This document shows, one piece after another, positions 3,278-50,030 of a DNA stretch of 64,000 nucleotides (its first letter is position 1; every line of letters begins with the position of its first letter). The stretch is from Orbicella franksi (Eukaryota). Position numbers and translations under genes: made by a program. The stretch is taken from contig OZ116707.1 in assembly GCA_964199315.1 (NCBI GenBank), positions 16,306,001 to 16,370,000 on the forward strand, in the 5' to 3' direction. Below the pieces are notes generated by a model that searched no databases, was not told the DNA's origin, and worked only from the letters and a program-made list of their open reading frames with translations.

Positions 3278-5830
3278 TGGGTAATAAAAATTGGAGACTG
3301 GGGAAGCTAGAGCAGAGCACAGAGACCACCTGATGTCTCAACTGTCTTATCAGGATCCTTTGAGCAATGCAGTCGGGACAGTGCCTTTCTTAGCCCCAGA
3401 AGTCATGTGCCGGGGGGGAGCCAACCAAATAATCTGATGTCTACAGTTTTGCAATGCTTTTGATTGAGCTTCTCTGTCCTCACAGGGCAAATCCATGGGC
3501 AGATGACTGTAAAGTGCCGTGTATTGGTGCATACGGTACATCCCAAAAATAATGTATGTGCAAAAAGTGGTGCAAGAACACGCAAACCGCTGCAAGAAGT
3601 AAAAATGTTGTGTTTTTGCGGTTTACCCGCAAGCACATTCAAAAGGCAAGAAGTTGAAAGTCTAACCGTAAGAAGCCACAAGAAGTTGAAAATCTAACCA
3701 CAAGAAGCCACAAGAACTTATGAATCTTACCGCAAGCCGCAAGAAGGCGCAACAAGTTGTTGTAGGTCAAACAGTCTGTTTGTTTATAAGTGCCATGTTG
3801 GTGGTCAAAATGCTCAGCGTTTGCTCGCAATGTTCTTTTTAACCATAAGATAAGTCACTGCAGTGGGAAGAGATATATTTCCAACAGCTGAGACCAGATC
3901 TGGATTTATGTTTGCTTATACTGTAAAAATAATATTGAACGCACTTGCTTATTATGTACTCGCGTGTTCATGACACCTACAGTTGTACGGAAAAAAAGCC
4001 CTTCGATCACTTGAACAGTCCGCTGGCAGATTATGCGACAATCACAAAACGTCTCTCAACAATGAAGCTCATGAAGAAACAGTCCACGTAGAAAAATTGA
4101 ACTATGGTGTAATTAGTCTGGGTTTCGACGCTTTTTGCTTCTGAACACAAAATTGATTATCATTCAGAAGTGTTGATGTCTTCTTCTTGAAGATATGTGA
4201 GCGAAGACAACTTTTGTTCAAATCGCACACTGAACTGCAAAGACTGTGTGCACTACGATGTTGTAAATTTCTTTAAGAACTTTTCGCAGAGTTAGTATTA
4301 CAGGTGAAGAGCTCTTGCAGAAAATATATTTTGTGTTTCTAAACAAACAGAGAATCCACTGAACGAAATCTTTTAAGACAGGGTGCACTGATATTGTTGT
4401 GACGCCTTGAATTTGCATAAAGTCTTCAAACATTACTGATGCATGAAAAGTCATGCTTTTCTCATGCATGCATGTAGTCCGGTGCTTGTTTTCGTCGACT
4501 GAGAAACTTGCTTGCTTCAAAATTTGGGTTACACTTGGAAGCTACCTCCCAGTAAATATGTGTTTTTTTAACCTTTGTTCTGGACAGAAAAAGCCATTTC
4601 AAATAAGCTCATTTTGCGCCATTATCACACTGCGGGTCCGAAACTCCGACACACATCATAATAACTGTAAACAGTAAAATTTCCTTCATGTCACCGAAAA
4701 ACAAAACAAAGTGTCTAATTCAGAACCAACCGATGAAAAAAGTACTGTTCTTAAACTGATGAAAATAATTATAAACCAACAAAAAGCCAAGGGCCTTATC
4801 TCTGTGTCAATCTGTAAAGTTATTTTGAGACTCTCAATTCACAGGTTGCTTAGCACGTGGCCAAACTCTTCCCACTGTTAGTGATAAAATCTACCGACTG
4901 ATGTATTCGCGAATGAAAACTCTCTCCAAGGAAGACTTCAACAGCGTATAGACTTTATATGGCTTACACTTTAGAACTTATAATATTAGTCACATCATTA
5001 AGAAACTTCCCAAGATCTCTTGTGTAACAGTAACTGTATACGTAGTAAGGTCGACGATTCGTTTGTTAGTCGGTACGGCTGAGAATCAACTTCTTCTTCT
5101 GTTATATTTGTTTACGTTTTGATGGATTGAAATACAGCTTTGTAGAACATGTAAACAGCAGCTCATGCCAACCAACGAATTGGAAGTTTTATCAAATGCG
5201 CATCCGTTCATTACTTTTTGTTTGGCCGTTCCTGGGGATCGGTCCAAATTTGAATTAAGTTAGGCTCATAAAAAGTTTGTTGTCTGAACTGAACTTTAGA
5301 GTTTAAATTATCAAGAGTTAAGAATTTGTCATTTTAATACTTCTTACGGTAAGTGCCGGCACTAGTTCTGTTTTTTAGTTGTGTTTTTTAGAACCCATCG
5401 TGAAGACGGTGCTATCTTGATACAGATTTTCGCATGCTAAGATATTAGCGCAAACAAGTTCTTGCGGTTTGAAAATCCTACTGCAAAGAAGTTCTTGCGT
5501 TTCGAAAATCCAACCGCAAAGAAGTTCTTGTGGTTTGAACTTCTAACCGCAAAGTTCTCGCGTCTTGCAGGATCCGAGCGCAAGCGACCCGCAAGAAGTT
5601 GCTGGCTTGCAGATGCAAAAAGAAGTTCTTGCGCCTGCATTATTTTTGGGCAGTACTGTACCTTCTACAAAAGAAATGTTTCAACTTACCAGGTGAAGTT
5701 GTCAATATCCCCGAATCTATATTAAGGCGTTTCTTGCAGCTGATTTAAAATGTGCTGGAATGAGGATCCCCTTCAAAGGCCACAATTTACAGAAATTCTA
5801 AAAGAACTGCTGTCAATGAGTAATTTTATG
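3278..5830 (+). pseudogene. Protein kinase C-lobe pseudogene, split by the TIR element at 3534-5658
   Basis: Manual translation with frameshifts: WVIKIGDWG, AVGTVPFLAPEV, SDVYSFAMLLIEL before the insertion; KMCWNEDPLQRPQFTEILKEL after it (subdomains VII-XI). Confidence 0.75.
3534..5658. mobile_element. Non-autonomous TIR DNA transposon with TA target duplication and subterminal repeat arrays
   Basis: Left ta|CGGTACATCCCAAAAATAATG; right CATTATTTTTGGGCAGTACTG|ta. Repeated GCAAGAAG(TTCTTGC) motifs at about 3580-3760 and 5450-5635. No recognisable transposase. Confidence 0.75.
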
Positions 5831-6549
5831 CAGAATGACAGTATCACAAACATGAAAGCAGCAGTTTACCAAAGTACTGGAACAACAGATCAGATACATT
5901 AACGACAAAAGCAACAAACACGATTCCATTGATGCGAAAATCTGGAATTTAACAATGCACCAAGGATCGGCTTTGGAAACCTTCACAGATATTGCTGTGT
6001 CTTTTGAAGAAGCTGGAAGTTTGAATCCAAAAGACCTCTGTGCAGATACAGAACAACAGGCATTTCAACTTGATGGTTCCCATGCATGTACATTTTTCGC
6101 CACGACACTCACACATAACCTAGGGATTCTGTTTATGTCAGAAAATAATATATTGAATAGCAAAAATGAATTGAAGAATTTTGTAGAAACACTGATAACG
6201 GATCTACCTAAGAAAATAAACAATACTAAATACCAAAGGTGGGTATGATGCTTTTCATAATTATTGCAACTTCATAATAAATACCAATTTACTATTGCAC
6301 ATTCAATGCTTTTCTGTTGGTAAAACATATTTCCATAAATTAAACAGCCATTATCATGAATTACATCTTATTGACGAGACCACTTCAAATGCAATTATTG
6401 CTAGATAGGATATAATTACTATGGTGCTGTGACTGTTACTTGCCTCTTAGAATTGAACTTGCCTTGTTAGTATGAATTAACCATTTGAAAAGCATTGCAT
6501 GCGTTCTAAAAGTATTATGTTACCTACTGCTGCTACATAATTTCATGTT

Positions 6550-7270
6550 AGTATCAAATTCATCAGGAATGGGTTCAACTCCCCCCTTTTACGAAACACT
6601 TTTGAAATGATATTGGAAATATGTGAAAAGTAAACTCAAGGGAGGATGTACAAATATCATGCATGTCATTTCGCTTTGTTAAATTTAAGAGGCTAGTAAA
6701 TAATGAATTACTGTGATATTAGAAAGCCCCACACATTTAAGAGAACTGTCTAATAACTTTTGTACACATCTTTTAAATTAGTAAAGTTCACCTTACATGT
6801 AATTTCTCGAAGAAAGTTCACACATGTATCAATGTGCCCCTCTGAAAGGGTATCCAATACATACCCAACATTCAGTTTATGTGCTCCTCATTTTTTTACA
6901 ATTAGGCATGTGGAACTCAATACGAGGTGCAGTGGAAGATAACCGGTATAATCAAAGCATCCCAAAGTACCTGCAGGAAAAGCGCAGGCAATTTTTGTCC
7001 TACTGTAAGAATAGAATATCTGCCACTGAGGAAATCAGCCCTGAAGAAATTAGGGAGGGTAAAAGAAAAGGAGAGTTCCATGTTGCATCTGCTGATTCCA
7101 AAGACATCTGGTATCCTTTGGCAGAGATGACAAAATGCCCAAGTGCAGCTGCCCGGACTTCAGTTGAACAGGTCTACTGTGTAAGCACTTCTTTGCTGTT
7201 TTCCAGCGTAATGCAGATTGGAATTGGGAGGCGCTACCCAGGAGCTTTTGAGAAAATCCACATCTCTGTC
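6550..7270 (+). pseudogene. SWIM zinc-finger remnant, probably from a MULE-type transposase
   Basis: 7135-7206 translates MPKCSCPDFS*TGLLCKHFFAVF (CxC...CxH). Upstream frames are broken. Confidence 0.5.
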
Positions 7271-9063
7271 TAGATGATGACGTTTTATATAAAACTAATC
7301 TCAATCTTGACTCCATACCTGAGGATCCAACTGAGCCTCCATTGTCTGCCTTTGTGCCACAACCACAAGTAGAGCCAAAGATGATAATAGAGTGAAATGA
7401 GTGAGGCAATGAAATGCAGGCAGACTCTCAAGCAGATAACATCTTTGACACAAAACGTTGAAGATATTAGTGCTCTTAAAGAACTGGGCAGCTCCTTGCA
7501 TTCTATTCATAATAAGTTTTTGTGTTACCAGGTCACAGATGGAAATACTATGCCAGTGGTGAAAAAATCAATAAAAAAATTAGAAATATGGAGACGAGTG
7601 CTAACCCTTTGATGCGTTCGACAAACTCGTACCCAGGCTCTCCATTTTTTGAGTAAAAATGTAAGCCTTTATAGTCTCCCCTCGTCAAAAACCTTCCTGA
7701 AGACGACTGAACACTTGGACAAAAACAATATTTAGCAGGGGAGGTAGGAGAAAATTGTTTAATTCAAGTTTAATGAATAAATTAATCACAATCGAGTGAG
7801 TGAGTGCCATTCAACTGCCTCCTAAGCTCATGGATGACGTCATCCACAAGCACATCATCCATGAGCAATAAAAACGAGAAGATAATGCAATATTTATTCG
7901 ATCCTCAGGATTTTGATCATCTTTGGCCAGAAAATGAGGAAGACAATGAACTTTGTGACACCTTGAAAAATTCCCTTCAGGAAATAGATGCAAACATGGT
8001 ACCTGTAGCAAAAAAATGCTATTCCACATGTTATTTAGTTACTGTCGTATATTTCATATTACCGTTCTTCAAGAGTCGATTTTTGGCCCACACGTGAATT
8101 GTACGAGTTCTAGATTGTTTTGCCATCTACTGGTTTAATTGTCATAGTCAGCAAACTCAAATACGTTTACTCGTCAGTTATTTAAGTTGCCTATAGTTGT
8201 GCTTAACTTCAGAGAGTGTGTAAGGCTAGTAGCCGAAGAGTAAAGCCATCGTTGAAGAGTCTTGGTACCTCTTGGCTTGATCAAACGAGTGAGCCTACCG
8301 TCGAGTAGGTTCTGCTCCTTAATCAGTGGCCACGCTAACATTAGTTGGAGAAGTACACAACAATAGTGTCTAATATCATTGATATTTGGCTTTTTCTTTT
8401 TCTGCTGGGATCCAGTTAAAGGGATACTCTACACCTCAGAACATTTTAAAAAAAGATAGCTAATAACCCAAATAAGAAGTATTGAACAGCTATAAGTGGT
8501 CAATCTTCGTATTTTTTGTGTAAATGGGGAATGTTCTTGACTTGCGGTTCGAGCTTTGGTTAACAGGTCAAAAACTGGAAGTGACGTAGAAAGGAGAACT
8601 CGCAAAACCTCTTCGATAATATTTACACCGGGGAAGATCAGCTGTGCTACGAAAAAGCTCGTCGTGTCGTGTGTTGTGTGAAAACATAGTCCAGGCCTTG
8701 TGCTTAAAATACCATAGAAAACCTTGTTTCTCTCTTTGAATAATTTTAGCGTAAGATTCTTCTCGTAAATGACTAGTTCAACATCATTACAGCCATTTAT
8801 AAGTAGGTGCGACTATCTCTAAAATTGCACCTATATCGTTATTGACTGAGGACACTTCAAAGATTCTTTGTACCAATAATCACGTGTATAAGTTCGCTTT
8901 CGCATATCAAGAAGTCAATTCAAGCAATAAAGTGTAATAGAGTTTATTATAGAGCAGTTGAGTTGTGTGCCCATTCTGTGTGAATTTAACACCAGCCCAA
9001 ACACTGCGACGCGACCACAGCCCTGTGCGTAACACTCCTTCGGCTTAAGCGCAACATACTATA

Positions 9064-11430
9064 ATGCCACATCGCTGTATAGCTGGTGGATGTTCTAACA
9101 TTTGCAAAGATGGAGTAAGCCTTCACAAATGGCCTGAAGATGCCCACTACGCTAAGCTATGGACGAATGCCATGGAGAACACCCGTACTGATGTTTTCAA
9201 CCCGACAACTAGCCGACTTTGTAGCGCTCACTTCACTGAGGATTCCTTTGAAGAACAGACGGTGATAACGAAATCTCTGAGCTTAAAGATGAAAAATATT
9301 TTGAAAGCCAATGCTGTTCCTACGATTTTTAAGAATGGTCCTCCCCAAAATCCACCTCCCCACCAACAAAACCTGTTCCTAGTGGCAGAGTCTTCACTTC
9401 TTAACCTCTTTCGGTTCTGCCCAGTTTGCCGGTCGGAATGTGAACGGATGGTCGAATCAAGAATTGGTACGAAAATAACAGTGTCGCAGAAATGTTATTC
9501 CTGCACATTCGCGACAAGCTGGGATTCGCAGCTCTCAGTTGGAGACATTCCTGTTGGGAACATCATGCTGTCCTCTTCTATCCTCTTTGGTGGTGGAAGC
9601 CCAGCAAAGGTGCTGAAGATATTGAAACATATGAATGTGCCAACGATATGTTACTCAACGTTTATGAATCACCAAAAGAAGTATCTACATACTGCTGTGC
9701 AGAGGACATACCAACAGCAACAGTCCAGTCTGCTGAACAGCATCAAAGCTGAAGGGCAGGAATTAATAGTGGGAGGTGATGGCCGCTGTGACAGCCCTGG
9801 TCATTCAGCTAAGTATGGAACCTACTCCCTTACGGATGCTGAGCAAAATAAAATCCTAGATTCTCAGTTGATACAGGTTTGTACTGGATTAAATTTAAAA
9901 TGGGCTCACAGAAGTATTTTTGTGCTAAGTAATACTGCATTTTAATTAATACTTATCATTAGAGCAACGAAGTGAAAAATTCAGATGCTATGGAAAAAGA
10001 GGGGCTTGCAAGATCACTCATATTCTTAACTGGTGAAGGATTGTCCATTAACACCTTAATAACAGACAGGCATGTGCAAATAAGAAAACATATGAGGGAG
10101 AGATGGCGTGGAGTTAAGCACAGGTTGGATGGTTGGCATGTTGGAAAAGGTGAATATTTGAAAGAAATTTAATTTGGATTAAAATCAACTGGCACAATTT
10201 TTAGCCACTAGTAACTGTAATTTTATTTAGGAACTGGAAAGAAGATTGATGCCCTTGCTAAAAAAAAGAATTGTGCTGTGGTTCAAAAATGGAAGAGGAG
10301 CATTGTCAACCACATGTTCTGGTGTGCCTCGTCAACAGATGATGATGACCCTGATCTCAAGGAGACAAAATGGCTGTCCATAACAAATCACCTCATGAAC
10401 AGGCATTCTGGACATGAAAATCCATCGTTTCCTAAGTGTGCTCATGGAAGGTTACATGGGAGAGAAAGAAAGAAAAAATGGCTCAAGCCAGGTACATAGT
10501 TAAAAAAAACTTTAAACTTCGTCAAGTCTCAATATCAACAAGCCTGTCTCATTAATAGCCCCCATATATACATGCATATTCAGGAGTATGCTTTTACATG
10601 AACACAGTTATTTGGTATGTATCATGATGTTTGATAGTTGTAAGGGATTAGATGCTTATCACTATAGGTGAAATCATTTATTTTTTGCAGGTACACCACC
10701 CTATGAAAATCTCACAGAGCTGCTGACAAAGGGGTCCCTCTTGAAAGATATAAAGCAAATTTCAGGACAACATGCTACATCTTCTCTGGAGGCCTTCCAT
10801 TCTGTCTACAACCACTTCGCTGCAAAAATGGTGGCCTTTTCGCACCATGGAATGACAAGCAGGTATGAAAACTTGAGCATATCATAACATCATAATGCAC
10901 ACTAACCTTGGTTAGAAATGTGACATTTTTCAGGTTGCCAAAAAACCTCTCTGAATTTATGTCATATTGAATGGAAGGTAAAACAAAAGCAAAAATATCT
11001 ATCTTTTTAGGTTGCAGATTGCAATCATGCATTTCAACGAAAACAGTGACAGGGAGCAGGCAACACTGCAAGATGGCAGAGAACGATTCAACATTGCTTT
11101 CCCAAAGTACAAGAAAGGAGAGCATACAGTAAAGAAGATTTTAGTGAAATGTACATATGGTGAGTAAAGAATTAAAGAATTTAGCAAACTGAAATTTACA
11201 ATTTTTTCATTTACATATTTACATTACATGTGCATGGTTAGACCCCACTTACTTTCATTTTTCACGTAGGGTATGTTGCCAACCTGAAAGAGAGTGTTGT
11301 ACGAATTCTCCAAGGCACTGAAAGTTCTGTTTTGGAGAGAGCTGATGCTCCCCGATCACTATCATCAGATTATGGCCGCCCTGACAAACAGGCCGCAGTC
11401 GATGCATTAAAATCAAGATTCAGGAAGTGA
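9064..11430 (+). CDS. THAP-domain Kolobok transposase, 6 predicted exons: 9064-9876, 9963-10149, 10231-10491, 10691-10862, 11011-11159, 11270-11430 (580 aa)
   Basis: THAP (CIAGGC...W...LCSAHF); motifs GDGRCDSPGHSAKY, ITDRH, DGWH, TSSLEAFHS, HFNEN, FPKYKKG. All five GT-AG introns are phase-consistent and the spliced frame has no stop. Confidence 0.82.
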
Positions 11431-11482
11431 CTTTCTTCACCAGGATCGTCCTCATCCTTAAAAGCTATATTGCAATATATTG

Positions 11483-11797
11483 ATAAGTAAATAAAGATGG
11501 TGAATTTTAAGCTCAGGTTTTGAAATGTGTAAGGTGAATTGATCAACAACACACGAGTATGGGACAAAGAAAAATTCTGATTCCCCGCCAGGAATCAAGC
11601 CCATGACCTCCCGAAGACTGTGTGGACGCTCTATCCACTGAGCTATGAGAACGCATGGACAGCAAGGTCATTAAAGTGAGTTCATATGTGACAGGTGTCC
11701 TGCATACTGCTAGGATCAGCACTGTCAAAGTATCAAGAATAGTGATAAGTGAATAAAGATGGTGAATGATGATGACTTTGATCAATTCACTGTTCAC
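11483..11797 (-). repeat. tRNA-like-containing short interspersed insertion with 14 bp TSD
   Basis: Minus strand about 11647-11578 has A-box TAGCTCAGTGG and B-box-like GGCTTGATTCC. Flanked by ATTGCAATATATTG at 11469-11482 and 11798-11811. Confidence 0.65.
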
Positions 11798-12381
11798 ATT
11801 GCAATATATTGTTAAACAAACAGCCATATAATTAGTGAAATCTAACCATAGTCAGACTGAAGTCAAAATTAATTTCATTAGAATTATATACTAACATGAA
11901 AGAAAATAAAGAGTATTGCTGTTGTTGTTGTTCAGGAACAGCAGAGACCGTTTTTAAGTGGTAGGGCTTAAAAATCTGGCCAATATTACTTTCAAGTAGT
12001 AAAATCCAAATTTTATCCAGATCATCTGAAGCCCTAGAAAATAAATCCCAGCAATAAAAGTGGTAGGGCTATAGCCCTGCCAGCCCCTCCCCCTCCACAG
12101 TCCCTGTTGTTGTTAGTAATACTCCACTGATCTCATAAATGCAAGGATCTTCGATCAGTCTTAGAAGACTGACTCAGTGACACAAAGTGAAATGGAAAAT
12201 AAAACATTAAATGAGGATCTTAGAATGTTTACCACCTTCACAATATAAATATGTTCTTCAAAGTATCTTACCCAATCACCCTAGTGCGATTATTTCGTCA
12301 GTTATAATCTCAAGGAAAACCCCAACAGACTAGTAGGGTCAACTAGAAGCTCAATTGAAATACTACACAGTATTAAAACAA

Positions 12382-13257
12382 TTACTCGTCTGGAAAGTGA
12401 AATCCTTCAAATACGAAGTCTTCTTCGAGCCCTGGAGGCGGGAAGTGTGCTCGTATGCAACACACAGCACATGATGGCAGAACCACTCGCACTTCCTTTC
12501 CCAAAAGACCCCAGCATCACCTCGCCAACTGCCTGTACGCTATGTGTCTATTTTGTTTGTGAGATGGCCCTTCGTAAGAATCTTGGTATTGTTGCTTGTA
12601 CTGGTACCATGCTGTCTGTAGAACCCAGCGATTCAAACAAACGGCGTGGAACCCTGGATGCTGTGTGATGCAAATGGGAGGTTCGGCCAGTCCTTCTGCC
12701 TCAACAGCTTCATTGTTTTTGGCTACAACGCAGTCAATTTCGGCACAACAAATGCACTCTACAACTCGATTTAGTCTCTGGCAACTTCCACACTTACACC
12801 TAAAATTTCCAATCAAGGTTTTAGCTCATGACCCAGAGCTTGACCTGTGCATATGAATGCAAAAACACATTCCAGCCGAGAATTATTTCACACATCGATA
12901 TTGTGGATATCTGCACACGAAAATACAAGCAAAACAATTCCATCACAAAGACCACGACAAGATAACTTTGTTGTCATCTTGAGCTCATTTATTCACTTAA
13001 AAAATCAAGTTACAAAATTACGGGTTGTAAAGAGAACTAGCCACAAGAAGTAGATTGATCTCTTACCAGTCTGTGTTTTGCAGTCGTTCGAATTCTTCTT
13101 CATCGGACTCATTTGGGGAGTCCGTGTCTGAGCTAGCCTCACTGTCGTAAGGCTCAAAGAGATACGGCTGCGTTCCTTGACAGTTTTCCCAGGTTGTGTC
13201 TTCTGTAGAATGTTCTTGAGAAGAAACAGACGAACTACAGGAATCCCCTGATTCCAT
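12382..13257 (-). pseudogene. KolX-like cysteine-rich protein (P2X7 cytoplasmic ballast/nanor-like), 2 exons 13257-13067 and 12799-12382; nonsense codon at 12517-12519
   Basis: Spliced sequence QPYLFEP...NTDWCKCGSC...ECICCAEI...CITQHPGFHAVCL...HIAYRQLAR*CWGLLGKEVRVVLPSCAVCCIRAHFP; TGA sits where a W is expected. Confidence 0.78.
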
Positions 13258-13699
13258 GCCAACTATAACCTTTGTGAAACAAGCAATGGCGTTAATCGAG
13301 TTCTCCTTTCTACGTCATTGATCACGTGCCTGAAAAGTCGTCTGTTTCACTTCCGGTCCTTGAATTGAGCAAAATTTTGCTTTTCTAGTGCAGTTTTCAG
13401 TCGTTAGAATTTATTTCTCCCGCTTTTTCTGTCTCTCATAAGTTTTTATAGTGCATATGCTACATTTTGAGCAAAAGTCAAAATATAGTGTAGAGTATCC
13501 TTTAATTATGGATATTACAAAAAAAAGATAACACAAGATCTCTTTTGTTAGGTTTTCCCGGTTGGGCTCCCTGTTTGTCACGTGATCTGTTTTCCATATT
13601 TGGCCTCCCACGAGGTCCTCGTGTTCAGTTGAATATAGAGTGTTCCGCCATCTTGGTTTAGTCTTTTATTTGTCCTCCGTATTTGCGAATACAGAACAC

Positions 13700-16600
13700 C
13701 TTTGATCCACAAGATTTTGATCATCTTGGTCCGGAAAATGAAGAAGAAGACAAGGAACTTTGTGAAGTCTTGTAAAAATCACTTCAGGAAATAGATGCAA
13801 ACACGGTACCTGTACTTGAATCAGACCATACTTTAAAAGAGGATAGCAGTGAATGTAATACAGATGGAAAATGGATAAAGATATCAGAATTGAGTGACCC
13901 TGAAAAGAAAGAAGAGGTTCTATGGACAGTATATCTGGCTCGTTTCAGTCATTCTTTGTTGAAGTAGTTTGGGAAGGATGCTATTCAGGCGGTTCAGCAA
14001 GCACATGATACCACTATTATTAACCTACAGCAGGTGAAAAAGCCTTTGCTTTCAGTTTCCAGCTTATTTGCCACAAAAGTTAAAAGGGAACTAATGGAAA
14101 TGAAATCTTTCATCAAAATGCCAGTGCTTGACGAAGTTCACAAAATGTTTGATAGAAATTATAACTTCAGGTCATGTTACGATAGTCTTCAAACATTAAA
14201 GGACGAATTTGAGGGCATCCCTATTATGGCTCTGACTGCCACTCTATACGACACTCAGTTGGTAGGCCTAGCTAACAATTATTTGCGATGTCCTGTACTT
14301 ATCAAAGGAAATGTGAATAAGAATATGAAACTGAATGTTGAAAATTATCAAAAAGTACGCCAAAAAGAGGGTGATGACATGTGGAATGATCTGGCAAAAG
14401 AGTTGCTTAACACAATACAAGATGATTGCTTTTGTATACATGGATTTTAAGGTGGATGTGGAGTGTTTTGTCAAGGGGTTGAAAAAGGCTGGGTTACATT
14501 ATGTGAAGGCATATCATGAAAAAATTTCCAGTGAAATGAAGAGCAGGGTGGACAACGAATTTAGAAACAAAGAATTCCAGGTCCTTGTCACAACTGAAGC
14601 ATAGGAAGTTGGAACTCACAGCCCTCACGTTAACCTTGCATGCGAAATATGACAGTGCTTGTGTAGGAATTTGGTTGAACTGGTAGAAATATCAATTCAT
14701 CAGATGGGATAATTCTTGTTAACGAAAGCATTGATGACCAGCGTCTTATTTATTGAACAAAGGGGTGTCTGTCAAGTGAGAAAGTGCAGTTCTTCTTCTT
14801 AATGCATTGGAAGAGGTTAGGAAACTCCCAATAACAAAAGAAGGAGTTAGCAAAGAAAAAGTTATTTCCCGTCTGGATTTCCTCATCTGACATTCAGGAA
14901 TATTTCGATTCATCGCAAAGTTATTCCAAAGGGAGTACGGATGAATGGTTGACCCATCAAAAATGAATGGTGGTCCATTCACTTAAGTCAACTTATTCGT
15001 CTAGGTCTCGTGAAATTATCTTTTAATGTTTACACTTTTGGATACTTTACAAGATTGTACTCCGTTACAGACAAAGGAAAAACCTTCCTGGAAAAATCAC
15101 ACGATCTGCTTGTATTGAACCCAGAGGCATTTGAACATAGAAAGGCAAAGATGCTAAAACCCCGAGGACATGTAAATCTGCAAACAGGAACAAACATTAC
15201 CTACCTTAGATCCGTGAATTATTACTTGACACCAAAAGTTGGTTGGAACTCAAACAAAGAGGAGTGTATGAATATCCTGGTTTCAAAAACGAAGAAAATT
15301 ATGTTAATTACTGCAAGGATATTAAGAAAGCAGTGAGATTTGGCTCATGCCAAAGACCCCAATTTATGTGAGAGGTAAGAGAGGTACCTCAACACAGTAG
15401 TTGCACCTACAGATCGATATGGAAAACACAGAAGTTTGGGACAAGTGGGCCTTTTGCGAAGGGGTGAAAGTATGTTCTGACATGAAGGTTGCCAATACAC
15501 TGTAAGTAACCAACAAAGAAGAAACAAACGCAAGGATCACACTTCCAGTCACAAGCTTGAGGAAACTGGTAATTGCCCAGTGCAAATTACCTGTGTGGCC
15601 TGCCGCAGATGACGGGAGATGGATAGAAGGAATGGGTGTCTACCTGAAAGAGACCTCAATCATGCGAAACCAGCACCTCACGTCATCTCACAATCCGTTT
15701 AAGATGACATTCACAATGCAATAAAAAAGGATCGTACTCTGATGATGAAACGGTTCCAGAAAGGCCACGGACTTGGATTTCTGCCAGCAGAAAAAGCCCC
15801 CGCCACATCTAATCCAAAGCGAATTAGAAAGGGGAGGCAGTTGGCATTGGAAAGCAGAACAAAAATTCATCCAGGAATTGTCCAACTCCTTCAAGTTCTT
15901 GAATTTGATGAGTTCAGGAAAGAATATGAAGACATGCAAGGAACCATCGATCAGGAATTCTTAGCAAAAGTGAATGAAAAAATGGGGAAGTACCAGATGG
16001 AAGGACGAGAGTACCTGACTTCGCCTTCGAGAAATTTTGCATTCTTTCTTGCCCCCCTATCAAACAGACGTACTGCGAAACACCAAAGATTTATACGTGC
16101 ATATCACATACACAAATAACAATGGATTTCCTTATTTACTTAACATGGTAGCTTTTAATGAAATTACCATGGAGTTTAATGCTGTTGCGAGAGTTCTTTT
16201 GAATAAACCAGACGGTGGTGCCTACCCAATAGCTATTTAGGAAATGTTTACCCACGTGACTAAAATACACCCATTGTTTAAAAATGGGCAGACTCTTAGG
16301 CAGATCATAGTAGATTTTGATCAAGCAGAATACAACAGCTTTGAAAGAAGTATCGGAGCAGAACTATGCGAGAAAATTCTGTGCGGATGTACTGTGCACT
16401 GGAAAACTTCTGTTAATCAAGTAAGTGATATTCTTGTGAAAAGCAAAGAGGAACAAAACTTTTCGCTACACTGGACATGCCACACAAGATCTTACAAGTC
16501 AAACTGACGTCAAGTTGGCTTTTGATGTCCTTTGTGGTGCAAAGAATATAGCGGAGGCAAAACATCTCTTACCACCTGATCTAGGTGCTACTTGTAATCA

Positions 16601-17234
16601 ACAAAACAATGCCCATTGGTCTCAGTCAACACATTGGGTGAGGTGGTGGACAGGAGAGAATTCTAAGAATGTTTTGTAAGGCCTACACTTTACGAGATAA
16701 TCAAGAGTGGGACGTGACACCTAATACTTGCAAAGCCGTTGAGTCCCTAAATCGTCAGGCAATTGGTGAAGGATGTATTAACATTGCAATGCTCATGAAG
16801 AATATTTACATGGAAGACAGGTTACATGACGTCAAAATTGTCGCAAGTGAACAAAACATTAACATAAGTTACGAGAATAACCACCAAGATGCAAAGGAAA
16901 AGAAAAGAAAAAAGAAAATGAATTCTCAATTAAGTTTGAGAGGAACAAAAGTTTGCTAAATGAAAGCGAGGCCCATATGGAACAAACACCTCCCGATAAG
17001 TGAGAGGTTAGACAAACGACCATCAAAACGGAAATTATATAGAGGAGAAAGGATGATTGGGACACAGGTTGAAGTAGAGTACAAAGGGAATGATGATGGT
17101 GTTGTAAAGTATCTTGGATGGATAAAGGCACGATTATGGATTACGATAAAGTGAACAGGTTTTTTGTTCAATTTCTGGATGATGTACACTGGATAAAAAC
17201 TCCAAACAGCAAAGATGTGAGAATAATCAGGTAG
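13700..17234 (+). pseudogene. Decayed RecQ-like helicase followed by a MULE-like DDE transposase region and a Tudor-like tail
   Basis: QPTA.GKSLCFQFPA (~14010-14075), VLDEVH and IPIMALTAT (14125-14245), AYH and QVLVTTEA (14505-14600), then IVDFDQAE and GCTVHW (16305-16400), WVRWW, AVESLN. Many stops and frameshifts. Confidence 0.6.
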
Positions 17235-17531
17235 ACATTCAGGGCCAAGTCACACTAGAGGACGAAACTGTTTACTTATGTCAAAAATCCGTCATCACAA
17301 TGAAAAACCAAGTGCGACCAGTTTGTTCTCCAAAGGACAAAATTTGGTCGCGGACGGACAAACTTCAAAGATGCCGTCAACTACCTCTGGAGCAGGCCAA
17401 ATTGAGACAAATCTTTGAAAACAAAAGCGAGGGTGTTTTGATTCGGAAATGATTTGACAGGTGATATGTAGCGGAGTCTCTATGCGATAGACTTCGCAGT
17501 AAAATGAATCACGTTCTCATTTCGCAACAAC

Positions 17532-18428
17532 ATGAATCCCGGCGCGGGCGACCAATTTTTCCCGTACAAATTTCCACAATATCCACCAGGATGGATCTAT
17601 CCTTTGCCAGGCCCTTACATGTTTAATGATCGAGGAAATCCCAGCCTATCTCCTTCAACCACAAGCACTGACTCGTTGCCAGAATCCCCTCAGTTCAGTG
17701 AAGACAGCTCAATGCCAGCATCAACCTCAACTTCTTCACGCAGTAGATCTTCATCAGCCGAGAACAAGAAGGCTCAGGATAGATGGGGTAAAGAGGAGGA
17801 AAAGCTATTAGTTCAACTGTGGGCTGAAAAACACAAACAGTTAGGAAGTCGAGAGTCAAGGAAAACATGGGCTTGGATCGCCAAGAAGATTTCGAAAACG
17901 CTCGGAACCAACAAGACGGCCGACAAATGCATTCGGAAAATGAAGTATATCATAGAACGATACAAGAATGCAAAAGATTGGAACAAAAACCAAACAGGAG
18001 GAAGCCTCAGGAAATCCGTCTACTACAATGAGGTCGATAAAATCCTTGGATGCCGCGATGTAGTAACCTTCAATCATGTAGCTGAAGCGGGAATCAGCGG
18101 CGAAAGTGCCACTGAAATTGTTACGGAATCTGGTGATAATACTGGCGAGATTAGTACTTCATCCAGCCCCAGTGTGCCAGAAACTCCAGCTGAAAAGAGA
18201 CGAACGTCAAAGAAAGGGAAACGAGCATCGAAACGCAAACCACCTGATAATGAGAGCGACAAAGAGTTCAAAATGGCTCTAAAGGATGTGAGACAGCAAG
18301 GGGAGAAAGTAGCAACCTTTTTGGATTCGTTGCAACAAACACAAACGCAGCAGCTCATCATGATGTGCTAGTTTATGGGATCAATTGTGAAAATCCTTGA
18401 CAACCAACAGAATGAGACAGAGAAATGA
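17532..18428 (+). pseudogene. Harbinger Myb/SANT-like (trihelix) DNA-binding protein; stop at 18369-18371 is probably premature
   Basis: RWGKEEEKLLVQLWAE...WAWIAKKI...KCIRKMKYIIERYK, then a coiled-coil-like C-terminus; the frame continues to TGA at 18426-18428. Confidence 0.75.
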
Positions 18429-18840
18429 ACTTCAATTCAAGACTATTTTTGACTATTGAGAGACAACCATTATCATGTTTATCGTTTATGTTACGAATCG
18501 CTCAAACGAAATTATGGAAACAAATGAAAGTAGTTTTAACCGATTTGTTATTGTTAAGACATAAATTACGTTTACGATACAATTTTCTCTAGAAATCTGA
18601 ACAACAGGTATTTCATTGCCGTGATGGAAATCGTTTCTAATGATTCAACATGAATGCCAAGCACAAATTACAATGCAATATCATAGTATTTGATTGTTCA
18701 TTTTCTTCCATTTTCTTTGTGAAAAATCAAATACAGCAAAAGTTCAAGGTCTAAGGATGAAATAATTAAAATCAGTTTGAAAAAAATCACTGTCTTAGCA
18801 ACTCTCTTATATCTTCCCCGTCTTGCATGAAGTCATTGTT

Positions 18841-21800
18841 GTATCTCGGGCAAAATATCTTAAAGGAACTGATTTCGCTGTGGCATGCGATTTCCCGAAA
18901 GAAATCGTCGACAAGAGAAAAGCACTTGTCCCGATTCTTAAAGACGCAAAGAAGAGAGGTCAAGACGCAAAACTCATCTTCGACAAACTGTACATCAATG
19001 GACAAGTATACACTCCAACCGAATCGCTATAGTCCTTCCAACGGAGCTAACGTAAGATATATTTTTTTCTCTTCTCTTGTTTCTCTGGGTTCCTTGCTCA
19101 GCCAAGCCCAGTTTAAAGGTTAGTTTGTAGATCTCGCTAATGTTTGCCTACAGAGGTCTAGTTAAATACCGAGCAGCATGTGCTCTCTTCATGTTATGTT
19201 TAGTCCCCACGTTCGAGTCACCCCGTTTATATAGTTTAACTTTAATTTCGCATTTTATTTCATTGTTTATAGTGTGTTTGCCGTGTTTGTTGACAGTTCA
19301 AAATCGCTATTTAGCATCTTTCTCAATGAATCACATAGAATCTGTGCTGCAAAAAACCCATGACTGTTCCTTTTAGACTCTCCTTTTGTTCTTTGAATGT
19401 AAGAGGTTTAAACCAAGCTAGAAAGAGGCGGCGGGTGTTCAGATGGCTTCATAACCAAAAATTTGACGTCGCTTTTTTACAAGAAACCTATTCATCCAAA
19501 AGTGTCGAAGAAATATGGAAAGCTGAATGGGGAGGGAAAATTTATTATAGCCACGGTACCACGCATTCAAAAGGTGTGATGGTATTGTTCAAGCCAAATT
19601 TAGATTTTGAAATCGAAAGCGCCATCGCTGACAAGAAAGGTCGGTATCTGTTGCTAAAAACCAACATGTTTGAATCGTCCTTCTTGCTAAGCAATATTTA
19701 CGCGCCAAATGACATTACCGCTCAGACAGCGTTTTTTCGTAACCTTGACAACATTCTTTTACCGTATGCAGATTCACAAATCATTTTAGGAGGCGACTTG
19801 AATTGCTCATTAGCACCTATAGATAAAACAGGTGGAGCTCCGGTTCAAAAGAAACAAAAAGTCATTGATGAGATTGAAGGCTTAGTCGGATGATTCAAAC
19901 TTCAAGACATTTGGAGAGATCAACATCCCAACAAAAAACAATACACATGGTGCGATAATTCCTTGAAAGTGCAATGTCGTTTGGATTACTGGCTTGTTTC
20001 GAAAGAATTGCCGTCTGCCATTGATATAAACATCATCAACCCCACAATATCCGATCACAGCGCTATCGCTTTTACTTTACAATCCAAAGAATATGCTAAA
20101 CGGGGACCCGGGTTTTGGAAAATTAACAACTCGTTGTTAAAAGACGCAAACTTCATTAATGAGCTCAAAAGCAAAATACCCGAATACAAAAATAAACACA
20201 GCTATCTCGCTGACAAAGGCCTGTACTGGGACATGCTCAAAATGGAGATAAGAGGATTTTGCATCCAATATTCAAAAAGGAAAAATAGAATAAAAAGAAA
20301 TAAGGAACGCGACCTTCAAAAAGAAATTGACGACATGATGACCTTACTGCAATCAAATAGATCAAAAGAAAACATTGCGAAGCTTTACCAATTAAGAGCC
20401 CAACTCAACCAGATTGCTGAATATAAAACTGAAGGAGCAATATTAGAAGCAGAATACGTTGGCATGAACAAGGGGAGAAAAACACCAAATACTTTTTAAA
20501 TCTCGAAAAAAGGAGATTCACAAAAACACATATAACTAGACTTAAAACAGACGAAGAAAGGGAAACTACCTGTGAAAATGAGATTTTAGAAATGCAAAGA
20601 GCATTTTATGAAAATTTGTATGCAAAGGCCCCCTGCAATAGTGACACACATAATGCCTTCCTACAAGACCCTAACCTGGTTAAGTTAGAAGAGCACGACC
20701 TGCATGAGCTTGAACAGCTTTTATCTAAAAGCGAGTGTTTCAATGTCCTCAAACAGTGTGCCAAAAACAAATGCCCAGGCAGTGATGGCCCCTCGGTTGA
20801 GTTTTATTTGCACTTCTGACATCTACTCGGCGAAGAAATGGTAGAAAGTTTTAATTACGCCCATAAATTAGGAAAACTAAATATCACTCAAAGACAAGGT
20901 ATAATAAAGGTCATACCAAAAAAACAAAAGAACCGGCTGTATTTAGAAAATTGGAGACCATTAACGTTACTTAATGTTGATTATAAAATAGCAACAAAAT
21001 CAATAGCTCACAGAATCGCTAAAGTCCTTCCCAAATTAATAAATGAAGACCAAACTGGCTATGTCAAGGGCTGCTACATAGGACAGAATATTAGACTCAT
21101 CAATGACATCATGAAGATAACTGAGCTGGAAAACATTCCCGGCATGGCGATTTTTATTGACTTTAAAAAAGCCTTCGACACCGTTGACTGGAACTTCCTT
21201 TTTAAGACCTTGGAGGCTTTAAATTTCGGTCCTCAGTTACAACAGTGGATTCGAACCTTTTACGCTGACTGTTCAAGCTGTGTAACAAATAATGGTTACG
21301 CCTCCGCTTTCTTTAATCTACAAAGAGGTGTTCGCCAAGGGTGCCCACTTTCTGGCTCCCTGTTTGTGCTCTGCGCCGAAATTCTTGCTAACGCAATAAG
21401 GTCTAATGCAGGTATCCAAGGAATCAATATTTACGGAAAAGAATTCAAAATTTCATAATACGCAGACGATACCACTGTTTTTGTTTCCGATAGTATATCT
21501 GCCCAAAATTTATTCCAACTGCTCAATGCCTTTCAAAACTGCTCAGGTCTCGAAGTAAACAAAAGTAAAACAGAGGGCATGTGGCTGGGCGCAAACAAAA
21601 ACAACTTGGAGGAACCTCTAGACATAACATGGCCAAAAGATCCCATACTTGCGCTCGGTATACACTTCTCCTATGATGAAGAGGCTACCTTTCAAAAGAA
21701 CTTTCAACAGAAATTGTCTTCAATGACTTCCCTACTTAACCTGTGGTACCCTAGGAACTTAACTCTACATGGCCGTATTGTCATCCTAAAAGCACTAGCC

Positions 21801-23329
21801 CTTTCCAAACTTATTTATAACACCGCTGTCCTCCCTGTCACATCTAATTTCATTCAAAATGTTAATAAAGTTATATCCCAATTCGTATGGCACAAGAAAA
21901 CCCCAAAGATAAAGCAAACCACAATGATTGGACCGAGAGCAAAAGGAGGTCTTGGAATGCCTGATTTTGATGCAATAAACAACGCTCTCAAAGCGACCTG
22001 GATCCGAAGACTTGATAACGGTTACCCTTCCGCGAACTGGACGCATATCCCTGTTACCATGTTAGAAAAATGTGGTGGCAAATTTCTCCTTAAGTGCAAT
22101 TTTGATCTCAAAAATCTCAATGTAAGAATTCCTCTCAAATTTTACGAGAAAGCCTTGTTGGCTTGGCAGTCAATCAATTTGTTTACTCCGTCCTCAGAAG
22201 AGGAAATACTTGATGAAATTCTTTGGAACAATAGATTCATCAGGATTGGTAACTACTCAGTGTACTACAAAGAATGCCATGAAGCGGGTGTAGAAAAAAT
22301 TAGAGATATCTTCAACGGTGACACATTTACATCTTACCGAGATTTCTGCTCTCACTTTGCCCTTAAAACTAACTTTCTAACCTATTACGGTTTATGCCAA
22401 GCAATTCCATCTAACTGGATTAAAACTTTGAAAGGCAAATTACAGCCGCATTCGAAGGAACCTACAAACATGGATAGAATTCCCCTTGAGAAGCTCTCTT
22501 GCAAACTTGCTACTAACTACCTTGTTGAAAAGAAGTTCGTTTCTGCCACCGCTGAAAAAAGACTGAAAAGAGCTAATTTGAACGACCAGCAAATTTATCA
22601 AACGTACATGATGCCTTTCAAGGCCACTAAAGATATTCAACTCTCGATGTTTCAGTTCAAGATTGTACACCATATTTTACCCACCAATGCTGCATTACAT
22701 AAATTCGGTATTAAAGAGCACGACCGCTGTCATTTATGTGCTGAAAAGCAAACAATTACACATCTCTTCGTAACTTGCCCCAACGTCCAGCTGTTTTGGA
22801 CAGAGTTTACTGATTGGTGGTACAGAAAAAACAATACTGTAATCACGCTCTCTGAAGCACAAATACTTTACGGCATCACAGACACCGTGCCTCTGTGTCT
22901 CGGTTTAAACCTCTGTACAATAATTGCAAAATATTATATTTACACCGCTTCAAAAAATGACGAAGATTATTTCTTAGACGCTTTCTTGGCTATCCTTAAA
23001 AACAAAATAGAAATAGAAACTAGCAGAGCAAAGGTGCAAGTTAAACTGTAAATATAGCTAAATATACTGTAAATTGTTGCTTTTTTGTCTTTTTTTTTTT
23101 TTTGCAGTTTTCACTAGTTCTAGTAACCGTAGTAAAAGTTTGTAGTAATTGGCCGCAATTAAAAAGTAGTGTAACGTAAGCGGTTTAAATAATACTGTTG
23201 TTTCGTCAAGCATTGTAATTAGAGCAAGTTGTAATTAGCGTAAGTAGCTGTATTGTTGTAGTTTTATACGTAGTTTTTTGTAATTAATAATGTAAGTATG
23301 CGTGCTGTAAAAAATAGATAATTAATAAT
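18841..23329 (+). mobile_element. 5'-truncated L1/Tx1-clade non-LTR retrotransposon
   Basis: ORF1 C-terminal remnant (LKGTDFAVACDFPKEI...FDKLYING), ORF2 and an AT-rich tail; ATTGTT duplicated at 18835-18840 and 23330-23335. Confidence 0.88.
19360..23051 (+). pseudogene. LINE ORF2 (APE endonuclease - RT - Zn finger) with several stops and a frameshift
   Basis: SLNVRGL, FLQETY, NIYAPN, GGDLN, RLDY, SDHSAI, GFWKINNSLL; RT WRPLTLLNVDYK, DFKKAFD, RQGCPLS, (*)YADDTT; CHLC...THLFVTC. Stops at about 19891, 20817 and 21456. Confidence 0.9.
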
Positions 23330-25374
23330 ATTGTTCTGTTCGTTTCTGCGGTCATCATCGTCGTCGTTGTAAAAATCATCATCCCATTCGTCCCCAATTT
23401 TAATACAAAAGTTATGCAGCACTGCACAAGCAACGGCAATCTTCACCGAAAATGTTATTCTGCTATCCAACTGCTTTTGTAGAATTCGCCAACGACTTTT
23501 GAGGCAGCCAAAAGCGCATTCGATGACTACTCGTGCAGATGACAGTTCCTTGTTAAATGTTATCTTGCTAGGGTCATGCGTCGCTTCAGGATAAGGCTTC
23601 ATAAGCCAGGGGGAAATAGGGTATGTGCTGTCTCCTACCAGGTAAGGACGAATATCTGTGATACCGATTCTTTCAACAGGTTCTTTCAGTACATCTTCGT
23701 TGCTTGCTCTTTGATAAAGAGAACTGTTTCGATATACCCTAGCATCATGAAGACTTTCTCGATAACCTGCTGCAAAGTCAAGGAATAATCCCTTACTGTC
23801 AGCAATGGCTTGAATCATGAAATCATGTTGCTGATTTCGACTAAAATAATCAACAGCACTGTCTCTAGGAGAATTATTTTGATATGGGTCCCATCTATAG
23901 CTCCAACAATGTTCGGAAGTCATGATTTATCCGTAAATGTCTCTATACATCTCATTGTCTCAGCCACTGTTGTTGGGAATTTGATGTACTCGTTCCTCAA
24001 TTCATAAAGAACCTCAACCACATCTTGACAAACCTCTATCGCTGTAGTTCTACCGACGTTTAGCGCAGGTCCTATGGTTTCATACGAATTTCCATGTGCA
24101 AGGCGAAGCAAACCACAAGCAAGAACCTTTTCAGGAGTGAGACAATTTCGCAGTATTGTATTCTGTCTCGTCAGCCGGTTGCGAATTACATTGAGCAACA
24201 AATTGAAGCTTTCTCTGTTCATTCATAAAAGCCTCAGAAAGTAGTCCCCTGGTATTGTCTGATCAAGGTAATGGATCTCGAACCACGATTCGACTGGACA
24301 AGGAAGAGTTCAATAATATGGTGCTCGTCCTCGATAACGCTTCCGTTGGCGCCAAATAAATCGTATCAATAGCAAGTTTTGTGCTCGTAAATTCTGCATA
24401 AATAACAGGCAGCATATCATTAAATTGATATTTGCCTGCTGCTGAAGAACCAGAAAAAAGAAGAAAACAATCACTGCAAGAATTCTTCATGGTAACATAT
24501 TTTGAGATCCCTTGTGTCACGATTTTGTGGATGTAAACAGCGAGTAAAGGCAGGTTCGCAGGAAATCGCGCACAGGCGCTCACAGCATGGCATGGTGTTT
24601 GTTCACAGATTTTGTTCTCAAGTGCGACTGTAGTCTTCCGGACAAATTTTTTGTCACTGGCCGATTTCAAGTCTGATTTGTCCAGAACAAATCTGAAATT
24701 GCCCTCCAGTGCGACTTGGCCCTCATGCAAAAGAAAATTCAATTGAAAACAATCAATCAGTTATAGAAACTGCCACAGCTGTAGCTACAATTTTGAGAGG
24801 ACTGACGTCCAGTTTCATACTGGTGTTACTTGTCTTAACTCAATATAGCCAGAAAAACCGTACAGATGAAAAAAATGGACTTGAGATCAAGAGGTTTTGA
24901 AACAAGTCAATGACATTTTGGCATAAACAGAGACACCACTGGGCTGAGTTGTTCGAGCCCAAAAATCAATACTTACTAACAGTAGTTAACCTGGATATTG
25001 GAGCTAATCATCCTTCTAAAACCACAGCCCTGGAGCATACATGTTATGAAACAGAGAGATGAGTTCCCAGAAACGACTGTTGCTTTTTTGTTTGCAAGAT
25101 TAATGTTCATTTTATCATCTCTGTAAAAGGAAAAAATGGAGTATACCTTGTAAGGAAGTAGCATAAAAGCATTTAAAATTCTACGTCATAGACCAGTTTC
25201 ATTTTCATGGTTACGTTTTATGGTTCGGGTTGTCTTAAAAAGTCGTTAGCAGCTGTTTTACACGTTTTTGTCATTGATTTAGATTGCTAACCAGTCTCTA
25301 GATGATTAGAGTTAAATAGCTGTAAATAAAACTTAAAATATGAATTATACTCCATATGGGATATTGTGATCGCC

Positions 25375-39127: not shown

Positions 39128-39523
39128 TACTTTAGGTTTGGTTTTGAAGTCATGTAAGCAGAAGCCAATCAGGTCCGGTTCAGTTCAAAACTGTCTTGTT
39201 CCTTGTAAACATAAAATCAATGAAGTGAAGTGAACTTCACTTTGTTTCCAGGTATCTATTCTCAAAGGTTGAAGTAAATAGCAAGGTACATGCATCTACA
39301 TCTGGGTTCAAGATTCAAGATTCAAGATATTAATATCAACTGTAACTATCAAATACATGTGCCCAACTAGGGGTGTGACCCAACAGACTCTAGATCGGGC
39401 TAAGAAAACTCGACCATTTGAGCGTCAAATATTATTACTTCAGTGTATACTGTTAATAAATAATGTGTATAAAAATCAGAAATATCCTTATAATTTAACA
39501 GTAAACAATCCTAATATACTACC

Positions 39524-49399: not shown

Positions 49400-50030
49400 G
49401 TCAGGTGGAGAGAAATTTAAAGTTCCTCTGCCATTTACTTTTCGAAAGAAAAAGGTCGCTAAGTTCCATGGTCTTCCACATTTTAAGTGGGATGACCTCG
49501 GCACACAAGATGTTATCCAACAAGGTTCATTTGGTGCCATATTAAGAACTAAATATTCCCAGAACGCTCGCAAATCAGTAGACATCGTAGTGAAGAAACT
49601 GCTCTCGTCCTCTGCGGGCTTTATTGAAGCTTTTGCCAGAGGCCACATTGTTGTCAGTTACGCCACGAAAACATCGTCCAGTTCAAAGCTGTTTGCCAGG
49701 ACCCCATGGCAATTATGCTAGAGTACGTGTATTTCGATATTGAAGTTTTCGGCGGTGAAGGAAAGCTAAGCTCATTAAACGAGTTAATGTACCTTATCGA
49801 CAGTCAAGACTGCAATGGAACAGAGGGCACATTTATGGATAAGATTGCCGCTGATGTTGCAGGAGGACTGCTCTACTTGCACAAAAATGGAATAGCGCAC
49901 AGGGACTTAAAATGTGTTGGTTAGCAATCACCACTATCGTGCGGAGACGGCTGGAAATAAGATAGCTTACGCGTGGAAACACGAGCCCGTGATATGTAAG
50001 CTCACTGATTTTGGGGAAACTGATTGCAAG
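49400..50030 (+). pseudogene. Intronless protein-kinase N-terminal/catalytic fragment inside the satellite-armed element
   Basis: IQQGSFGA, IVVKKL, IMLEYVYF, GLLYLHKNGIAHRDLK, ICKLTDFGE across frameshifts. Confidence 0.75.

Follow-up and report, generated by a model that had tools for sequence, protein, structure and literature searches.

A gene joining a RecQ-type helicase to a Mutator-like transposase in a probable Foldback-like DNA transposon of anthozoans

When a RecQ-type helicase runs directly into a transposase on one strand of coral DNA, do the two belong to a single protein of one mobile element, or do two elements lie side by side? The question is raised by a 64,000-nucleotide stretch of the Orbicella franksi genome (assembly GCA_964199315.1, contig OZ116707.1, positions 16,306,001 to 16,370,000 of the forward strand), which as a whole is called the window here and is numbered from its first letter. 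On the plus strand, 13677–17234 opens with a helicase of the RecQ type; a Cys/His segment comes next, then the core of a DDE transposase, and a small β-rich end closes the series. A first-pass annotation, made from the letters and their open reading frames (ORFs), had placed RecQ, Cys/His, Mutator-like element (MULE)-type, and Tudor-like parts here on one strand and had proposed that they form an intronless fusion in an undescribed element; all of these parts do lie there on the plus strand. Pfam searches with the open pieces of the window returned weak helicase matches only and no transposase match. Since the window alone could not decide whether the fusion is real, intact relatives were needed. 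Sequence comparison with these relatives indicates that the helicase–transposase fusion is real and old. The window segment very probably belongs to one copy of a large DNA transposon, Foldback-like in build and of the Mutator (MuDR/IS256) type, that is found across anthozoans.

Intact relatives of the fused protein

A full HMMER search was made with an 88-residue piece of the window that includes the second catalytic aspartate and the CxxH motif. It returned 70 relatives, nearly all of them short fragments; the long matches P0020 and P0064 were repeat artefacts and were rejected. Full-length proteins were found through cluster members, including P0086 (1,760 amino acids [aa], cut at a contig end), and a word search with the transposase region of P0086 yielded 13 long relatives of 980–2,040 aa. 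The fusion is carried in a single ORF by P0086, P0098 (1,949 aa), P0094, P0096, P0102, and P0103 (2,040 aa, Stylophora pistillata), and in all six the Pkinase, DEAD, and Helicase_C domains (Pfam) are present together with the transposase region. From the N-terminus to the C-terminus, the protein consists of a kinase, a protease with a viral-tegument-like deubiquitinase (VTD) fold, a RecQ helicase that includes the C-terminal zinc/winged-helix region, a Cys/His module, the DDE core, and an Agenet/Tudor-like barrel.

The intact anthozoan relatives are single intronless ORFs of 1,950–2,040 aa, and because these relatives are uninterrupted, the gene is taken to lack introns. The first-pass annotation had suggested a test for one ORF of about 1,150 aa. 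Uninterrupted ORFs that span both helicase and transposase occur on more than 10 independent contigs from several species and deep lineages. Exactly the same order is kept in a lineage of about 29% identity (L006 and L007), so that the proposed intronless fusion is borne out; the independence of the two halves was checked as well, and the presence of both in one ORF of the intact relatives favours a true, old fusion. The distant member P0106 (1,080 aa) has the same domain order. On the Tara scaffold L008, again in the same order, 43 bp separate the end of a helicase ORF from the transposase ORF that follows it, which is 726 aa long; L005 holds a 3′ fragment only. The named hosts are stony corals (Stylophora and Montipora), sea anemones (Exaiptasia and Actinostola), and an octocoral (Paramuricea); the contig of one Montipora member, P0108, was not located. 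One further member, P0169, is deposited at NCBI under an Acidobacteria metagenome-assembled genome and is most likely cnidarian DNA that was wrongly binned.

Transposase core and accessory domains

An alignment of 20 family members was used for the core motifs and for a Pfam scan of each member. Invariant in all 20 are the first D (DITYT), D323 (VDFD), C348xxH351, a WW pair, and N464..E467..N470 (TNNPVESLN). The CxxH motif is common to Dada, hAT, Kolobok, and P and is not diagnostic of MuDR alone (PMC10045372). The Pfam scan gave sub-threshold matches to PF10551 (MULE) in half of the members (10 of 20) and to PF00872 (Transposase_mut) in 3 of 20, and no other transposase family was matched in the 20 members. 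In an AlphaFold model of the region from the zinc module through the DDE core to the Tudor-like end, the mean predicted local distance difference test score (pLDDT) was 75, with the core at about 90 (85–94). A helical insertion (model residues 349–473) stands before the catalytic E, and the core matches DDE transposases that have insertion domains. The top structural match was ISCth4 of the IS256 family (Foldseek, 3.6e-5; VIA-align, Z 11.3 and 10.7), and a sequence profile of the same region found no match among solved structures. The evidence is consistent, each item being weak, and points to a DDE RNase H-fold core of the MuDR/IS256 type. The MULE-like assignment of the first-pass annotation is supported, as every Pfam and structural hint, individually weak, points to Mutator/IS256; its further claim that the core differs from those of AcademH and KolobokH agrees with the invariant CxxH, the lack of any DUF6589 or PF20700 match, and the different layout, all of which point away from an Academ- or Kolobok-type core.

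The helicase part is assigned to the RecQ family by its DExH superfamily 2 (SF2) sequence motifs and its RecQ C-terminal region. Residues 690–1330 of P0098 matched residues 20–502 of Escherichia coli RecQ at 4.6e-36, across both helicase lobes and the RecQ C-terminal region. E. coli RecQ was followed by RECQ1, WRN, BLM, and RECQ5; RecQ-family proteins made up the top 37 matches, and other SF2 helicases lay far below. The RQC match of the relatives in Pfam is weak. The kinase keeps the VAVK, HCD...N, DFG, and APE motifs.

The approximately 370 residues between the kinase and the helicase were folded on their own. The resulting fold matched 8add (VIA Z 16.6 over 188 residues, root-mean-square deviation 3.0) and cytomegalovirus M48 (2j7q; Z 14.7), and Foldseek matched it to viral-tegument-like deubiquitinases at 1.6e-4. 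The triad is conserved in the relatives, with the Cys of DG(T/S)NAC about 134 residues before the invariant D206-T-H208. On the modelled fold, this interval is VTD deubiquitinase-like and is predicted to be a protease.

Two smaller modules flank the core. The Cys/His module, with strands at model residues 11–98 (pLDDT 80–90), is conserved and ends in HNH-x-KP just before the core. Mutator transposases have an N-terminal zinc finger of the WRKY/GCM1, FLYWCH, or SWIM type; the module here matched none of the Pfam zinc-finger families even at E values up to 10. Tudor/Agenet domains are five-stranded barrels whose functional hallmark is an aromatic cage; at the Tudor-like end, the model has five strands at residues 570–624, and sub-threshold Agenet matches were found in 12 of the 20 members (best 1.4e-4).

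Inverted arms and the nature of the element

At the P0098 locus, a 55-bp tandem array lies downstream of the gene (L002 16222–17046), and the same array lies inverted upstream (L003 8709–9724), with a Pao retrotransposon nested between the arrays of this copy. A second contig of the same assembly contains a 2,457-bp non-autonomous derivative (L004) that has both arrays and shares 98.6% identity with the autonomous copy over its internal part. The termini of this derivative, GAGGACT... and GGGGACT..., are imperfectly inverted, and it is flanked by a duplication, CTTCGGTA, of 8 or possibly 9 bp, a length within the range of about 8–11 bp that marks Mutator elements. The derivative shows recent mobility in the genome of P0098. 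In L009, a sister copy of the window element from another assembly, the arm at 7010–7669 pairs with 11970–13126. At each end of the element, a terminal inverted repeat of about 100 bp, imperfect in sequence, precedes an inverted array of 55–68-bp repeats that is 0.7–1.2 kb long, and such inverted tandem-repeat arms are a Foldback-like build. The 12-mer TAACTGCGAAAT occurs both in the 65-bp unit of the window family and in the 55-bp unit found with P0098; it is a likely binding site that has survived about 50% protein divergence.

The autonomous copy sits between two same-strand TRIM-like genes with RING, B-box, filamin, and NHL domains (L003 3425–8425 and L002 24541–25850), as if the element had entered a tandem gene array.

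The reading of the window segment as part of a Foldback-like Mutator transposon, which we consider very likely, draws on the order of the domains, the conservation of the catalytic residues, the inverted arms and termini, the one target duplication, the non-autonomous derivative, and the nesting of elements in the window. Several points weigh against it: (i) all Pfam transposase matches lie below the curated threshold, the best being PF10551 with an E value of 0.0013 and 19.5 bits against the required 27.6; (ii) the lead of ISCth4 in the structural comparison is only about 1 Z unit, since Hermes reaches Z 9.9, Transib 9.3, and the P element 9.1; (iii) a profile search for a bridge to annotated MULEs stayed inside the family; (iv) a clean target duplication was found in one copy only, and none was found at L003/L002 or L009; (v) the left end of the element and the first 188 residues are absent from the window; and (vi) the helicase, kinase, deubiquitinase, and chromatin-reading activities are predictions by analogy.

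The closest known kinds are Foldback/Rehavkus for the ends, the duplication, and the type of core, and AcademH/KolobokH for the RecQ accessory. Foldback/Rehavkus elements of MuDR have, as here, a DDE core with CxxH, long inverted ends built of repeats, and a duplication of about 9 bp, and Rehavkus itself has a 9-bp target site duplication, a minisatellite before the 3′ terminal inverted repeat, and an extra reader-type finger (PMC6446971). Unlike the family here, they have no reported helicase, kinase, or deubiquitinase. The reader of Rehavkus is a PHD finger and its hosts are arthropods and annelids, whereas the present family has a Tudor/Agenet barrel and anthozoan hosts; the two are compared here by description. 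IS256, the accepted prokaryotic relative of MuDR (PMC10045372), supplies the best structural match to the catalytic region in ISCth4 (PDB 6xgx/6xgw/6xg8), which in contrast is bacterial, measures about 400 aa, has no accessory domains, and is 10–13% identical to the family core. A papain-like deubiquitinase module, as here, occurs in Helentrons with VTD/OTU (PMC9741609) and in MuDR-6_HM with OTU (PMC6446971); Helentrons, however, are rolling-circle elements with a Pif1-type helicase, and MuDR-6_HM has no reported helicase or kinase.

Membership in a catalogued helicase-bearing group, AcademH or KolobokH, would account for the RecQ-type helicase, which both groups carry (PMC3627910; PMC9587614); AcademH is moreover a eukaryotic DDE transposon that occurs in animals and makes 9–10-bp duplications (PMC10045372). 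AcademH, however, belongs to another transposase superfamily and Academ is not listed among the CxxH families (PMC10045372), whereas CxxH is invariant in the present family, Academ being compared by description only. KolobokH resembles the family in joining a RecQ helicase to a CxxH-type DDE transposase, but it has its helicase downstream of a THAP/Kolobok core and is reported from fungi only (PMC9587614), whereas the family described here has it upstream and occurs in anthozoans. KolobokH also makes TTAA duplications, as does a Kolobok nested in the window, and the one clean duplication of this family is 8–9 bp long. As no member matches DUF6589 or PF20700 even at E values up to 1 in Pfam and none matches THAP, we regard membership in either group as highly improbable. 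A less remote alternative, still unlikely in our judgement, is that the element is as described here yet already stands in Repbase or Dfam as a MuDR/Foldback family. Many cnidarian MuDR entries of Repbase never appeared in papers, such as MuDR-6_HM with its OTU domain (PMC6446971), and the VTD paper mentions in one sentence, without describing the element, cnidarian VTD domains fused to "transposon-associated domains" (PMC9741609). Against prior cataloguing, the Repbase-based MULE survey lists OTU, SET, PHD, and zinc fingers and no helicase or kinase among the accessory domains (PMC6446971), published lists of DNA transposons with a helicase are limited to Helitron, Academ, Kolobok, and Inton/Enton (PMC9587614; PMC3627910), and full-text literature yielded nothing relevant that joins MULE/MuDR with RecQ or a helicase.

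Two further readings concern what the gene is. That the helicase and the transposase are two neighbouring elements is suggested by the window itself, a dense pile of nested elements that includes an unrelated RecQ-like fragment at 42240–42839; it is refuted by the more than 10 independent contigs on which uninterrupted ORFs span both halves, and since the window halves are collinear with these ORFs and have no terminal repeat between them, we give this reading practically no weight. Domestication, in which the family would be host genes, namely RecQ paralogues with a captured transposase domain, fits the persistence of long open frames and the host-gene labels of the Stylophora members at NCBI ("ATP-dependent DNA helicase RecQ" and protein kinase shkC). 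It is hard to reconcile with a gene lying between inverted arrays with shared termini, with the 98.6%-identical 2.5-kb derivative and its target duplication, or with the many decayed and truncated copies, the window copy being a pseudogene pierced by other elements, and we consider domestication very unlikely.

DDE transposases of this class bind repeated end sites, pair the ends, and cut and join them. In the proposed Foldback-like Mutator transposon, the zinc module together with the core would recognise the TAACTGCGAAAT-type sites that recur in each arm and would perform the DDE cleavage and strand transfer. Hairpins and cruciforms are unwound by BLM and other RecQ helicases; in Drosophila, the synthesis-dependent repair of the gap that is left after P-element excision requires BLM. 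Because of these activities, two roles may be proposed for RecQ: it would melt the hairpin or cruciform structures of the long inverted arrays, making foldback arms usable and stable, or, alternatively, it would bias repair of the donor site to synthesis-dependent strand annealing, which would restore the element and give a net gain of copies. By analogy, one may guess that the kinase and the deubiquitinase modulate host damage and ubiquitin signalling and that the Tudor-like domain tethers the complex to methylated chromatin. Relatives of IS256 move by copy-out-paste-in, and a replicative step assisted by the helicase is conceivable in this family. A bolder proposal, which we think rather improbable, is that the family is a distinct, deep IS256/Mutator branch in which, in animals, helicase-dependent replicative or repair-coupled transposition is combined with a virus-like host-manipulation kit in one polypeptide. 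The element would then depend on RecQ for opening its foldback arms or for being copied out, and its kinase and deubiquitinase would redirect the DNA-damage and ubiquitin response of the host in the manner of large DNA viruses.

Helicases are known from the rolling-circle Helitrons and, on the DDE side, from AcademH and KolobokH, two lineages that have been little studied. If the reading as a Foldback-like Mutator transposon is true, the family would represent a third independent capture of RecQ, by a Mutator-type transposase with foldback ends, and the recruitment of RecQ would be a recurrent event in DDE transposons. The family would also be a tractable system in which to ask whether such a helicase opens hairpins at long inverted repeats or steers gap repair. 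A search of the literature on MULE, MuDR, and Foldback elements with RecQ, helicase, kinase, or Tudor found no helicase-bearing MULE, with deposition in Repbase or Dfam possible. As far as we could find, no paper describes the combination of kinase, VTD, RecQ, Mutator transposase, and Tudor-like parts, and the addition of a kinase and a tegument-like deubiquitinase to such a protein is unreported for any cut-and-paste element. The first-pass annotation was therefore probably right in proposing that the element is undescribed, with the same proviso about the databases. The fusion also bears on the idea that VTD proteases have spread through transposons. Coral members that are labelled as a host "RecQ helicase" or "protein kinase" can mislead studies of DNA-repair and signalling gene families. 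The family is of interest to transposon specialists; the window specimen itself is only a wreck.

The window copy and its neighbourhood

The window copy was mapped by tblastn with P0098 as the reference for residue positions. Residues 597–1943 of P0098 are collinear with 13677–17228 of the plus strand, with E values from 1e-69 to 0 and 55–65% identity in the conserved blocks, a sequence match far above chance. The copy spans from 3300 or before to about 41537 and is split by at least 4 later insertions. It is dead: the reading frame changes at least 9 times, in-frame stops number more than 10, about 48 residues are deleted, and the first catalytic D is replaced by H, so that the first-pass description of a decayed copy was apt; it is an old wreck of which 13677–17234 is the best-preserved segment. 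No second copy of the element was found within the window.

The N-terminal part survives in two remnants on the plus strand (tblastn). A remnant of the kinase C-lobe (P0098 residues 188–258) lies at 3300–3513 with one stop and one frameshift, and the linker with the N-terminal half of the VTD-type cysteine protease (P0098 296–448) lies at 5744–6230, where the catalytic-Cys motif survives as LDGSHAC. The kinase/linker coding is interrupted at 3532–5660 by a nested non-autonomous element, 2.1 kb long, whose terminal inverted repeats measure 35 nt; the residue count across it fits within one, with residue 258 at 3513 and residue 296 at 5753. The first-pass annotation had missed this N-terminal kinase and deubiquitinase-like protease (remnants at 3300–3513 and 5744–6230), and its reading of the parts was to that extent incomplete, with the order of those that it named being correct.

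In the linker between protease and helicase, a nested Kolobok occupies 8420–13500, with a TTAA duplication at both sides, a THAP + PF20700 transposase on the plus strand, and a P2RX7_C-like partner on the minus strand. This Kolobok was considered as the source of the helicase, in a KolobokH-like layout, and was rejected, since its own ends, each flanked by TTAA, lie at 8420 and 13500.

The coding region resumes on the plus strand with the acidic linker and the start of the helicase (13677–14069; P0098 597–748), where the region of motif I is frameshifted. The RecQ helicase core follows at 14046–14819 (Pfam and tblastn), with DEVH at 14130–14141, ALTAT, and the Helicase_C lobe. The piece 13968–14447 matched Pfam DEAD at 4e-4, its best solved-structure match being BLM at 6e-4, and the piece 14335–14601 matched Helicase_C at 8e-4. 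In the RecQ C-terminal zinc-binding and winged-helix region (14783–15368, plus strand), about 48 residues are deleted and several stops are present. The first-pass annotation had listed RecQ motifs I, II, III, IV, and VI; DEVH, ALTAT, and Helicase_C are present, motif I is broken by frameshifts, and the C-terminal region lacks those 48 or so residues.

The Cys/His β-sheet zinc module (15377–15700, plus strand) was placed from columns 1–110 of the alignment of 20 members and from the model strands, and the DDE core (15700–16956, plus strand) from the alignment, tblastn, and structure searches. The first catalytic D has become H at 16100–16102, the second D is at 16313–16315 (VDFD), the CxxH motif reads CTVH at 16388–16399, and the E is at 16741–16743 (AVESLN). 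A basic linker and the Agenet/Tudor-like C-terminal barrel complete the gene (16957–17234, plus strand), with the Tudor-like end at 16960–17231 and the stop codon at 17232–17234.

A nested PIF/Harbinger with perfect GGGCCAAGTC termini and a TCA duplication (17243–24721) begins 6 bp past the transposase stop codon. It contains an intact 279-aa Myb/SANT-like ORF (17532–18371, plus strand) and a DDE_Tnp_4 remnant (23264–23923, minus strand) and is split by a LINE with APE and RT domains (19360–23051). Over window 15919–17239, the sister copy L009 has 86.5% DNA identity, and its match runs unbroken from the coding region into window 24726–25371 and then into a 65-bp array that corresponds to 25374–26082. 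Because this match is continuous across the site, the Harbinger is an insertion and the array is part of the element. The 3′ untranslated part of the element accordingly lies at 24725–25373 (plus strand), with 82–88% DNA identity to L009 11106–11576 in continuation of the coding match, and is followed by the right-arm array (25374–26082, plus strand), about 11 copies of a 65-bp unit that each hold TAACTGCGAAAT and a short palindrome and are homologous to L009 11970–13126.

The last degenerate repeat unit and the right terminal 80 bp or so lie at 41431–41537 (plus strand). They are 83% identical, in the same orientation, to L009 13100–13206, roughly the last 105 bp of L009, and the two copies cease to be similar at the same base, ...GTCAAAGTACC(GC). 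The simplest reading is that about 15.3 kb (26083–41430) was inserted between the array, which ends at 26082, and the terminal segment, which starts at 41431, as suggested by the collinearity of both flanks with L009. Inside this DNA lies a P-like element, with inverted repeats that extend to 27338 on one side and 40742 on the other; the roughly 2 kb that flanks it (26083–27337 and 40743–41430) would make up the rest of the inserted DNA. An AGTCC at 26115–26119 was dropped as a candidate for the right terminus, since L009 puts the terminal segment at 41431–41537. Contrary to the first-pass annotation, in which no termini were found, both the array at 25374–26082 and a right end near 41537 exist. 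A search for terminal inverted repeats close to the first-pass segment (12500–19500) found none because the ends of the element lie far beyond that interval.

Other sequences lie near the copy. A Pao pol ORF occupies 39–2429, upstream of the kinase remnant, within a Pao/BEL pol at 39–3011 (plus strand) that shares the orientation of the giant gene and lies directly upstream of it. A Pao/BEL pol likewise lies upstream of the P0098 gene on an unrelated contig (L002 1659–6971), again in the same orientation, and in one database ORF, P0068, a DUF5641 segment of Pao is fused to the DDE core. The repeated adjacency could reflect coincidental nesting or a preferred target. About 0.7 kb past the right end, the second RecQ-like fragment (42240–42839, plus strand) matches Helicase_C at 2e-5 and E. 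coli RecQ at 6.6e-12; tblastn found no similarity between it and the giant-element family, and it may be the remnant of another helicase-bearing element, such as one of the AcademH type. A kinase-like stretch 8 kb past the right end (49655–49912, plus strand) is 29% identical to P0098 residues 85–167, a part of the kinase that is absent from the window copy, and may be a fragment of another copy or of an unrelated kinase.

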